A stretch of DNA of 63,887 nucleotides, filler included, from Olpidium bornovanus S191 (lineage: Eukaryota > Fungi > Olpidiomycota): NCBI GenBank assembly GCA_017911155.1. It is 32 parts of 32 records of this genome, joined end to end, with 100 filler letters (N's around TTAATTAATTAA, not from the genome) between each part and the next. Parts side by side here need not be neighbours in the genome. Positions count along the whole stretch, not along the records: positions 55,416 to 56,640 come from JAEFCI010012522.1; 31 more parts are not named here. One strand, given 5' to 3'. Below, piece by piece: positions 1,537 through 56,640 of this stretch (positions are counted from its first letter, which is position 1; every line of letters begins with the position of its first letter). The notes beneath the pieces were generated by a model that worked only from the letters and a program-made list of their open reading frames with translations, ran no database searches and had not been told where the DNA came from. A program made the translations under genes and the position numbers.

Positions 1537-2794
1537 TCACCTGTCCCATCCCTTTACGACCCAGGCATCGTTCCTGTCGGCTCCAACCTCTCGCAGGACG
1601 TCACGTGCCGCTTGACGCCACTGCTCCATGTCAGGCCAGTCCGACGAACAGCTCCAGGGTTTTTCCGAGACGTAGTGCAGGAACCGCGCGCACACAGGGG
1701 GCGGCGGCGGCGAGGGCGGCGGAGACACGGCGGGAGCGTCGCTGACAGAGAGAGCACCAACCGCTTGGGACGCATCATCATCCGCCGTGCTCTGGTTTGC
1801 GCAATCGGCCCGGGGGGCATTAGTTGCCGTGATCTCCTCCCGATTCCGGTCGGATTTTGCTCCGGGCGGGCCGGCCTCGTCTCGCGCTGTATAGCCCGCC
1901 ACGGCCAGGCGCTCGAGATCCGCGCTTCTCCACGCGGTGCACCAGAAATGCCTGCCAATGTTGGTCCAGCCGCGCGCGTTGTAGAACTCGGTGACGACCT
2001 GCTCGTCGGGGCCCCAGGCGCAGCCGGCGACCGGGCGGAACGACCTCACGCGCCTGACGAGCTCGCGGTGGTCCTCGCGGCTCGGGGCGAGGAGGAGCAT
2101 TCCGCAGGAAGCGTTCTGCTGCCAGGGCTGGTTCCCCACGCCGTGCGCGTCCACCCGCTCGCCGTGGGCGTGCGAGCCCCGGCCGGGAACGTAGCCGCGG
2201 CTGCGCACGTGGCTGATCACGGCGGCGGGAGGGGCGAGCGCGAAAATGCCGTCCGCGTTGGCGACGCACAGTGCGTCGGCGTCCACGACGCAGATCTTTT
2301 CGTACTGCGTCAGCAGCAGGGCGTGGAAGCGCGTGAAAGATGTGTGGATCCAGGGATCGTAGAATTTGGCGAACCTGGCCGGCCAGGGGGGAAGGGTCGG
2401 GGGAAGAACAGCGCGGGACGAATTCCAGGTTGCAAGTCAGCGAAGTCACATGCATAACCCCCAAGAATCACGCTCCACGGCGACAAGACGGGGAATCCAC
2501 TGCGGCGACCGCAGCGAAGAGACCCGCAAGAGTTTTAGCAATTTCACTTTCTCGCGGGCGCGCGCGGGCGCAGCTGCGCACCAATCCCGCCGGCCTAACA
2601 GGAGGGCGGCCAGGCGAGACGAACGAAAAAGAAACGGGCGGGGTGGGGGAAGGGGTGGTGAGAAGGGGGGAGAGGGGGGGGGGCGCGGCCCACCTCCCCG
2701 GGTTCCACTTGCAGTTCTCCCGTGCGCAGCTGAGGTAGGGCACCGTAACGACGGCGGTGTAGATTTTTCGAAGGGCTTCCAGCGCGGCCTGGGG
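1537..2794 (-). CDS. Glycosyltransferase family 8 (glycogenin/P13-like), 5'-truncated, one intron (2375-2693)
   Basis: Spliced translation: ALEALRKIYTAVVTVPYLSC..KWNPG|RFAKFYDPWIHTSFTRFHALLLTQYEKICVVDADALCVANADGIFALAPPAA..NASCGMLLLAPS..GPDEQVVTEFY..FLHYVSEKPW. It contains the DxD motif, the FT(K/R)..L.L.QYEK motif and the C-terminal HY..KPW motif of GT8. The intron is GT-AG and in phase. Confidence 0.85.
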
Positions 2795-2894
2795 NNNNNN
2801 NNNNNNNNNNNNNNNNNNNNNNNNNNNNNNNNNNNNNNTTAATTAATTAANNNNNNNNNNNNNNNNNNNNNNNNNNNNNNNNNNNNNNNNNNNN

Positions 2895-4545
2895 CCTCCT
2901 CGTAAAGGCCCCACGTCCGCTCGTGGTCCGCCTCCGTCTTCTCATTCTCGGCAACCGCCCGCCGCTGCTCTAGCCGGCGTCGGACTCGACGGCAGAGCGC
3001 CTCCTTCGGAACATGGCGCGCCAGGCTGATGCCTTCGTGCGCGTGGATCGCAAAGACACGCGACGCGGTCGCCGCCCTGCGGCCGGCCGGCGCTGGAAGA
3101 CGTCTCTCAGGTGGAGGCCCTTGACCGTTTCATGCGTGGCCTCAAACAACAAACACGCGTTCAAGTCCTCGTACGTGACCCCCACTCCTTGGAGGTGGCC
3201 ATTCGCTTAGCCACGACATACGACTCGGTCATGTTCGGCACCACCTTCGCTGCCGCCACCACGCTCTGCTCAACAGACCGTTCCGCCCAAAAAAAAAAAC
3301 TCCCATGGACATCAGTCAAATTAACAACATGGACAATGCTGATCCGGACCCAGGGCGCGCGGCCGCCCTTGAGGCGCTCGTCCAGGCCTTCGACATCTGC
3401 CTCCACAACTGACACCGGCCGGCCCTCGCCGCCGGTCAAACCCTGACCAAGATGACTCTGGCTATCCGCAAATGGTGCATGGAAAATGGCACCTGTTTCT
3501 ACTGCCGACAAGTCGGTCGTGCCGCCGCCGCTTGCCCGACTCGCCCGGTGTCGAGGAATGTAACCCTCCCTCGAGGGGTGGCAGGAGGGCGGGATGGCTA
3601 GGGCCCTTGCTGCGGTGTGCGGGACGTACCTTTCTCCTCTTCGGAACGACTCTCTGCGCCCTCCTGCGTCCGTGCCCGGCCACCCCCTTCGATTGACCCT
3701 TCGAAGATGTGTACAACGCGCGGCTCTTCTGCCACTACTCCCTCCCCTTTGGTCGCCTCCGCCTCGTCCCAAGGCGCGCGCCGACGCCGTTCGTAGGCGC
3801 CGCCGTCGCAAGGCAGCTGAAGGCTGGTGGGCTCGAACCGTTTGTTTATTATTCTTCTGCGGGCTATGTGGGAGGAAAAAAAGCGTGCAAGCTATTGTTT
3901 TGTTAGGGGGGGGGACTATGACAGGGCTCGCCCCGCGGCTCGGTCGTGGGCAGCGAAGCGAAATCTTTCCCGACACCGGCCCGTCCCGTAGTGGCACATC
4001 TTAACGTGGAGCACAGTTGACTAGCACGGCGCGGCAGGTCGGACAACCCGCACACCGAACATGCCACGCAGTCGACACTAATTCGTTATGGATGCGGAGC
4101 TCGCCGGCACACCGGTCCGCGCAATGCTAGATAGTGGCTCCTCTGTCGATGTCATGAATAAACATCTTCTGCCTTGTTCTTCTTTGGGGGGTCGGGGACC
4201 TACCGTTTGGAATGCTGACGGCCGCACCGAACGGGGGCCGGGGACCTACCGTTTGGAATGCTGAGGGCCGCACCGAACAAACCTTCTCACCAGTTGATGT
4301 CCCCATCTCAGCACGGGATATATCAGGAGTCACTCGCCAGGAAATGATCGCTCTCCTTCCAGCAGATATCCAAGAGGACTTCATCGTGGGCAAGCCATGG
4401 TTACACAGGCATAACCCACGCATAGATTGGACCAACAACCACGTCACGTTCCCTGAAGCGGCCCCACCTGTGTGTGTCCTTCAGCTGTCGACAGACTCCC
4501 CGCGCCTACCAGAGGACCCGCGAGAAATCATCGCCGGTACCGCGG
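2895..4545 (+). mobile_element. Degenerate Ty3/gypsy LTR-retrotransposon gag-protease remnant
   Basis: Gag-like ALDRFMRGLKQQTRVQVLVRDPHSLEVAIRLATTYDS (about 3114-3230). Aspartic protease VMDAELAGTPVRAMLDSGSSVDVMN (about 4085-4160). Protease C-terminus DFIVGKPWLHRHNPRIDWTNNHVTF (about 4375-4452). Frames are broken. Confidence 0.85.
4187..4278 (+). repeat. 46-bp tandem duplication inside the gypsy protease (causes a frameshift)
   Basis: ggggg(t/c)cggggacctaccgtttggaatgctga(c/g)ggccgcaccgaac occurs twice in tandem with 2 mismatches. Confidence 0.9.
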
Positions 4546-55415: not shown

Positions 55416-55537
55416 AGGAAGCCGATGAGGCCGGGAGCCTTCTGCACAACGTCGTGCGTGGCAAAATTCTTCTTCGCCCCGAAACCGACGTTGTAGCCGG
55501 TCTCAGCAATGCTCCTGAGCAGCCCCTCCCTATTCAT
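55416..55537 (-). CDS. SLATT-family two-transmembrane CBASS effector, N-terminus only (bacterial)
   Basis: MNREGLLRSIAETGYNVGFGAKKNFATHDVVQKAPGLIGF resembles the SLATT N-terminal LL..IA.T.YNV.F.AKKHFA..DI..K.P..IG motif. Its ATG (55537-55535) overlaps the cyclase stop (55532-55530) by 8 nt. Confidence 0.75.
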
Positions 55538-56640
55538 CCTCGTCCTCTTGGTTCGCGCTGATAGGGACGTGGATGCGGTCGGTCGCCACGACTACATCGT
55601 TAATGAGGGCATAGCACTCAACAACGTGGTCGCCCTTGAATTTCGTATGCTCCACGTTCCTCTTGTATCCCTCGTCGGCGACTATCTGGCCCCGGATGCA
55701 GTCACGGTTGATAGCCTCCTGCCCCCGATTGAGCACTTTCCAGAACAGACCGTAGGAGCCGGGGATGTCCGTCTCGACTACGGAGAAGGTGAGCTTCTTA
55801 CGCGGCATTAACAGGGTGCGATTGCTCAGCATCTCCCGCAGGGAAGCGGGTCGAAATCCGTTCTGTTCGACCTGGCAGTCGATACGGATGTTGTTACGAA
55901 TGTCGATGGTGGCGAATACATCCTCGGGGAACTCCTCCGTCATGCGGACAGCATGGCCCGCGCGGTCGGTCAGCGCCGCCTTCTCCACCTTCTCGGCAGC
56001 GGGGAACAGCCGTCCGTATACCGCGCGCCACTTGTCGTTCTGGTTGTCCTTGCCCTCGGCCTCGATTGCCTTAAGGCAAAGCTCGTGGGCCTTCTTCGCC
56101 TTGCGCTGGAAATTCTTTTTCACCTTCACCCGCTGGCCGCTCCCCAGCGCAGCAAAGTAGTCCTGCTTGGGCAAGTCCTTGAGATAGGCGAAGAAATCGC
56201 GGCTCATCCAGTCATAATAAAGATAGCTCTTGTCGTCATACTCGCTGGTTGATTTTAGGAAGTTGTGCGCAAGGGTGTCGATCAGGAGGCCGCCGATCCC
56301 CACTCCGTGCTTGTTCTTCCAAGCCCGCGCCATCTTGCAGAGCCGCCGGAGGTTGTTGTTCTTCTCCGCCACAAATTCCGACATAGCCTGTATCTCGTCA
56401 CGGGGCTTGGTGATCTTCCAAGACCCGCCGTTGTAGGTGTCGGGATATTTGAAGCTGCCGTCATCCTGCTCGAATACGGGCTGAGCCTCCACGGTAAAAT
56501 TGGAATAGACGGCCTGAACAACAAGCCGATCCACCCTGACGGTCGTCTTGGGGTAGCGCGCGCGGATGGCGGCGGCGGCGTCGGACAACAGCTTGGACTG
56601 GCCGCCGTCTTTGTAGTTATCCCACTCACCCTTCGGCATG
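55530..56640 (-). CDS. cGAS/DncV-like nucleotidyltransferase (CD-NTase/SMODS) fused to a C-terminal AGS-C domain, 5'-truncated (bacterial CBASS cyclase)
   Basis: Intronless 369 aa: WDNYKDGGQSKLL..IRARYPKTTVRVDRLVVQAVYSNFTVEAQPVFEQDDGSFKYPDTYNGGSWKITKPRDE..NLRRLCKMARAWKNKHGVGIGGLLIDTL..WRAVYGRLFP (SMODS fold), then TEEF..LREML..KKLTF..FWKVLNRGQEAINRDCIRGQIV..EHTKFKGDHVVECYALINDVVVATDRIHVPI (AGS-C). The GS/DxD N-terminus is cut off by the contig end. Confidence 0.9.

Follow-up and report, generated by a model that had tools for sequence, protein, structure and literature searches.

A type I CBASS system pairs a CD-NTase with a single effector. About 30–40% of type I cyclases carry an AGS-C fusion (bioRxiv 10.1101/2023.05.21.541620). 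The E. coli operons EcCdnF04-SLATT6 and EcCdnF05-SLATT6 restrict many phages by at least 10,000-fold (Richmond-Buccola et al., bioRxiv 10.1101/2023.05.21.541620). Among AGS-C cyclases, only DancE (EaCdnB-Cap15) of Escherichia albertii has been characterized in detail. Its AGS-C domain is a beta-barrel, in which conserved Asn, Gly and His are needed for function; the enzyme makes c-di-AMP, is activated by dsDNA, repressed by DnaK and triggered via a phage prohead protease (bioRxiv 10.64898/2026.10.06.757031).

The window analysed here is a stretch of 63,887 nucleotides, filler included, in which 32 parts of the genome assembly of the fungus Olpidium bornovanus S191 (GCA_017911155.1) are joined end to end. 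One piece of it (window 55416-56640, record JAEFCI010012522.1), with a length of 1225 nt and a G+C content of 58%, resembles the operons above. We estimate a probability of about 0.9 that this piece is a type I CBASS fragment from a close Sphingomonas relative of isolate ID0503, co-sequenced with the fungus as free bacterial DNA and lying outside the fungal genome.

Gene organization of the piece

Two co-oriented genes with an 8-nt stop/start overlap, as described in an earlier note on this DNA, were borne out by direct reading at 55537-55530. The features of the piece are as follows, P0001 being a full-length bacterial protein discussed below.

55530..56639, minus strand: CD-NTase (SMODS) and AGS-C cyclase, 3' 82% of the gene (PADLOC PDLC00796, identity to P0001)
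56639..55530, minus strand: open reading frame 1, the cyclase fragment, 369 codons plus stop TAG at 55532-55530, with its ATG (56639-56637) at the very contig end
56376..56624, minus strand: SMODS core, C-terminal half, residues 6-88 (Pfam PF18144, 2e-18, profile positions 81-162 of 164)
55557..55940, minus strand: AGS-C (Ig-like / beta-barrel), complete, residues 234-361 (Pfam PF18134, 3.9e-45, profile positions 3-129 of 129)
55416..55537, minus strand: SLATT_6 two-transmembrane effector, first 40 codons (Pfam PF18169, 8e-17, profile positions 1-40 of 176)
55537..55416, minus strand: open reading frame 2, the effector start, with its ATG at 55537 and 40 codons to the contig edge
55537-55530, minus strand: stop/start overlap ATGAATAG, 8 nt, read directly
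55549-55543, minus strand: Shine-Dalgarno-like AAGAGGA, 5 nt upstream of the effector ATG, read directly and putative in function

The effector gene directly adjoins the cyclase gene in the same operon, the SLATT_6 start overlapping the cyclase stop. The 8-nt overlap fits a translationally coupled gene pair. An identical overlap was present in the bacterial contig L001 (SRR8931242_18942, a 5.6-kb Logan contig and the best match of the protein search, at 100%), in which the two genes occupy 1244-2599 and 2592-3176. The overlapping start and stop and the Shine-Dalgarno-like site are bacterial features.

Assignment to type I CBASS

Both profiles for which a search had been proposed, CD-NTase and SLATT, were found (SMODS, 2e-18; SLATT_6, 8e-17). 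The Pfam SMODS match of the 369-aa open reading frame scored 67.6 bits at a cut-off of 26.5, and the same reading frame matched the PADLOC oligonucleotide cyclase model PDLC00796 at 1.6e-158 over profile positions 71-431 of 432. A full-length AGS-C profile match sits at the C-terminal end of the SMODS cyclase. The 40-residue peptide additionally matched NCBIfam NF033630 (SLATT_6) and the PADLOC 2TM effector (1.1e-18). With the NCBIfam model CBASS_cyclase_b the score was 66 bits against a cut-off of 200, which places the window cyclase outside this equivalog.

No Cap2/Cap3 or HORMA/TRIP13 genes were found on the piece or adjoining the operon in L001 and in L003, the contig of Sphingomonas sp. 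ID0503 described below; the operon is therefore of type I. In both bacterial contigs a ParB-like gene precedes the operon, and a RES/Xre toxin-antitoxin pair in convergent orientation follows it. The piece is thus supported as part of a type I CBASS pair, a CD-NTase-AGS-C gene followed by a SLATT_6 effector gene. The type I architecture with an AGS-C fusion, as claimed in the earlier note, was upheld by the Pfam, PADLOC and NCBIfam profiles and by full-length, 100%-identical bacterial copies.

Placement of the window cyclase in clade F is a lead, offered on the ground that the published operons with AGS-C and SLATT6 are F04 and F05; the PADLOC cyclase models carry no clade names.

Truncation of the cyclase and effector genes

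The 369-aa open reading frame was 100% identical to residues 83-451 of P0001, a protein of 451 aa as called. The reading frame described earlier therefore exists, but the gene is incomplete, its first Met being residue 83 of P0001. That protein reads ...VGSYGRHTAIKGISDLDMLYIMPKGEW..., and the first Met of the window reading frame is the M of "IMPKGEW", five residues past DLD. Both the profile coordinates and the P0001 alignment indicated that some 70-82 N-terminal cyclase residues are missing from the contig. The GS and DLD motifs lie 5-20 residues past the contig edge, and both are present in full-length P0001 and in L003. The source cyclase gene looks intact in the bacterium. As read from the sequence, both gene ends are assembly edges rather than mutations, with no sign of a pseudogene. 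As a side observation, the start of the 451-aa call at L001:1244-2599 (and of a mechanical 454-aa TTG reading frame) is probably too early, as most relatives have 438-439 aa and begin at MSIADTF.

Within the part present, Glu51 (codon 56489-56487) was invariant in 11 homologues and aligned with an Asp of Pseudomonas aeruginosa CdnD (chain 6p82_A); by this alignment Glu51 corresponds to the putative third active-site acid. In the AGS-C domain, N304, G336, D337 and H338 were invariant within the cyclase family in the homologue alignment.

On the effector side, the full gene (L003:11103-11687) encodes 194 aa and matched SLATT_6 at 4.5e-71 over positions 1-175 of 176. The contig stops where the hydrophobic stretch of the effector begins, so that only the cytoplasmic N-terminus is kept and 154 of the 194 residues fall beyond the edge, among them the expected two transmembrane helices after which the family is named. 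With these residues and the GS/DxD motifs off the contig, the window fragment is unable to encode an active system.

The earlier note had also pointed to CATG at the contig end. This holds for one end only: CATG at window 56637-56640 is native bacterial sequence, the Ile-Met codons of the cyclase (L003:10000-10003), and not an adapter, and the opposite end of the piece had no CATG. A remnant of a SMART oligo, considered as the source of this CATG, was rejected on the same two observations.

Comparison with characterized systems

EcCdnF04-SLATT6 and EcCdnF05-SLATT6 of E. coli have the same architecture as the piece, an AGS-C-fused CD-NTase followed by a SLATT6 effector. A chromosomal pair of E. 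coli CE0026f was 52% identical to the piece in the cyclase and 60% identical in the first 40 effector residues; it is likened to F04 and F05 by architecture, and no paper naming the accession of this CE0026f homologue was found. The CE0026f pair (NZ_CP119000.1, L082:3665-5576) adjoins a Qat anti-phage system; the island in which both are located lies next to tRNA-Phe and also contains an integrase and IS remnants. Of 5426 complete E. coli genomes, only 5 carried the pair.

The invariant N304, G336 and H338 of the window family are likened to the Asn, Gly and His of DancE by description and not by alignment. The DancE effector is the beta-barrel Cap15, in contrast to SLATT_6 in the window, and the two cyclases probably belong to different clades. 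A c-di-AMP product, activation by dsDNA and repression by DnaK have been demonstrated for DancE only.

In a PDB sequence search only distant CdnD chains matched; no close solved structure was found, and the DancE structure was not among the matches. The nearest solved structure by sequence was P. aeruginosa CdnD (PDB 6P82, 6P8U, 6P8J), with which GS, DxD and the third acid align. CdnD is very distant from the window cyclase (E 2e-8) and has no AGS-C domain; it belongs to a type III (HORMA/TRIP13) system.

For the trigger, product, signalling and membrane-killing steps we infer a course from the type I CBASS systems that have been characterized. On phage infection the CD-NTase would be switched on, its AGS-C fusion helping in sensing or regulation. 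The activated cyclase would then make a cyclic nucleotide signal. In response to this signal the SLATT_6 membrane protein would become active and harm the inner membrane; the infection would thereby be aborted, the cell being killed or arrested.

Nucleotide match to Sphingomonas

DNA and protein were scanned against one genome per bacterial species (185,579 species representatives). Only two 100% protein matches were found among them, both in Sphingomonas: isolate ID0503 (L003; NZ_JBLZUR010000002.1, a 3.41-Mb contig with the operon at L003:9746-11687) and an uncultured metagenome-assembled genome (MAG; L002). The piece was identical to L003, to L002 and to L001 at 1223 of 1225 nt each (99.84%). 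Relative to these three operons the piece is a 1225-nt internal fragment with two synonymous substitutions. Both proteins encoded by the ID0503 operon were 100% identical over the part present, and the 8-nt overlap was the same. The next genome after the Sphingomonas pair was Neorhizobium, with 85.5% DNA identity. The two differences from ID0503, both at third codon positions, are listed below.

55551: synonymous difference in an Asn codon, L003:11089 T>C, common to runs X1 and X19
55851: synonymous difference in an Arg codon, L003:10789 C>A, common to the drinking-water run X1

The X1 contig carries both variants, so the piece agrees with the drinking-water strain at both variable sites. The earlier note had named a near-identical match in a common soil, rhizosphere or reagent bacterium, together with coverage unlike the host, as the sign of plain contamination; the sequence half of this was found, at 99.84%, in Sphingomonas, a common bacterium of water and soil. 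Sphingomonas also appears in the classic listing of genera that contaminate reagents and laboratories (Salter et al. 2014, PMC4228153).

In the MAG contig, L002:1-518 had no match to L003, and the remaining 5 kb was 99.84% identical. Either the upstream context of L002 may differ from that of L003, or the MAG contig may be chimeric.

Genomic setting in the bacterium

In L003:3065-18153, the CBASS pair and the RES/Xre pair were located among genes for SSB, DUF6878, YAcAr/SLOG, ArdC anti-restriction and ParB-like proteins; the same region also holds strawberry-notch-like helicase and Toprim/DUF7146 genes. In its gene content the region resembles the leading section, or the cargo, of an integrative conjugative element. 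A megablast search of the piece against 72,556 plasmids gave no match; the element is no known plasmid and is chromosomal in ID0503.

The protein search returned thousands of relatives, including Qipengyuania (94%), Salinisphaera (87%), Novosphingobium (85%) and Serratia (83%). Proteins with 80-94% identity occurred across Sphingomonadales, Rhizobiales, Lysobacterales, Serratia and Bordetella, and an integrative conjugative element, if that is what the region is, would account for their scatter over proteobacterial orders. With the operon in a mobile region, sequence identity indicates the element as much as the host species. The source might accordingly have been another bacterium with the same conjugative element. 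The conjugative-element-type genes around the operon, the spread of 80-94% protein relatives across several orders and the upstream flank of L002, unlike that of L003, are in keeping with such a source. Both matches above 99% among the 185,579 species representatives were nevertheless Sphingomonas, with the next at 85%, and we consider a different bacterium very unlikely. Sphingomonas is the simplest source, given a 5.6-kb stretch identical to its chromosome and the two Sphingomonas genome matches.

Occurrence in sequencing runs

All sampled 31-mers of the piece occurred in 15 metagenome runs, which span drinking water, rhizosphere, groundwater, aquatic, sediment, ballast-water and soil samples. 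Runs of three different named organisms (A, B and C) contained 26-94% of the 31-mers, and four runs without an organism name contained 47-96%. The contigs of four runs were compared with L003:8001-14000.

In the large run X15 (organism A), numerous short contigs of low depth agreed fully with the ParB-like, cyclase, SLATT and RES genes. Contigs of 151-343 nt from this run matched the bacterial flanks, the ParB-like gene and the RES toxin gene, with 0 differences; these flank-matching, low-depth contigs indicate that the DNA in X15 is in a bacterial context and of low abundance.

This bears on a recent horizontal transfer of the operon into the fungal genome, in which case the contig would be a true fungal locus. 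The contig is too short for flanks to show, which leaves room for such a transfer, and no positive point was found otherwise. Against it stand the near-identity of the DNA to that of a living bacterium (99.84%, all changes being synonymous), a contig without eukaryotic flank, an overlapping start and stop and a Shine-Dalgarno-like site that are bacterial in kind, genes cut by the contig ends alone without decay, and the presence of the bacterial neighbours in at least one non-metagenome run. We regard a transfer into the fungus as exceedingly improbable.

Run X18, a tiny organism-A library, contained a 375-nt contig that opens with GTGGTATCAACGCAGAGTACATG and continues with the cyclase gene from L003:10349. 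The opening GTGGTATCAACGCAGAGTACATG is the tail of the SMART template-switch oligo; joined to the cyclase sequence, it indicates that bacterial nucleic acid got into this low-input cDNA library. In the drinking-water run X1, a contig of 5638 nt matched L003 except for an internal stretch of about 2.5 kb, to the left and right of which the same 8 nt (L003:11582-11589) occur. In this strain an insertion sequence seems to have entered the 3' part of the SLATT effector gene and duplicated a target of 8 bp.

The distribution over runs also bears on whether Sphingomonas could be a steady partner of the fungus, endohyphal or tightly associated with its culture. Three separate studies contributed organism-A runs, each with part of the piece, which would suggest recurrence if organism A is the fungus. 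The same sequence, including both synonymous variants, was however present in a drinking-water metagenome, every sampled 31-mer was also found in metagenomes of soil, groundwater, sediment, ballast water and the rhizosphere, and runs of two further named organisms contained much of the piece. Such a broad distribution points to a ubiquitous strain that lives freely and not to a host-restricted symbiont. Additionally, one of the organism-A libraries was a tiny SMART-type cDNA library, and low-input libraries of this type are prone to reagent contamination. A steady partnership is improbable on this evidence, though it keeps a small share of our expectation.

The account preferred here, free DNA of an ID0503-like Sphingomonas, draws on the demonstrated domain content, operon layout, truncation and bacterial source of the piece. 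The bacterial DNA would have entered the fungal data set through a contaminant of the culture, the sample, the water or a reagent. The origin in a co-sampled bacterium put forward in the earlier note is supported by the 99.84% identity to ID0503 and by the X1 drinking-water strain, identical at both variable sites; its alternatives, an endohyphal bacterium or horizontal transfer into the fungus, gained no support from the sequence evidence.

Implications

CBASS operons of this kind are well known from bacteria, and the finding is an ordinary one, of use mainly to curators as a warning of contamination. The contig should be marked as bacterial (Sphingomonas), and either dropped from the fungal assembly or labelled in it, to avert false claims of cGAS-like immunity or of bacterium-to-fungus transfer in early-diverging fungi. 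That a zoosporic fungus acquired CBASS very recently, or that it has Sphingomonas as an obligate partner, has in our judgement very little chance of being correct; if true, an early-diverging fungus would in either case contain a cGAS-like defence system or live with one. The CD-NTase-AGS-C and SLATT6 operon type is of current interest in phage defence, and the full-length, near-identical copies in cultured Sphingomonas are the proper material for such work.
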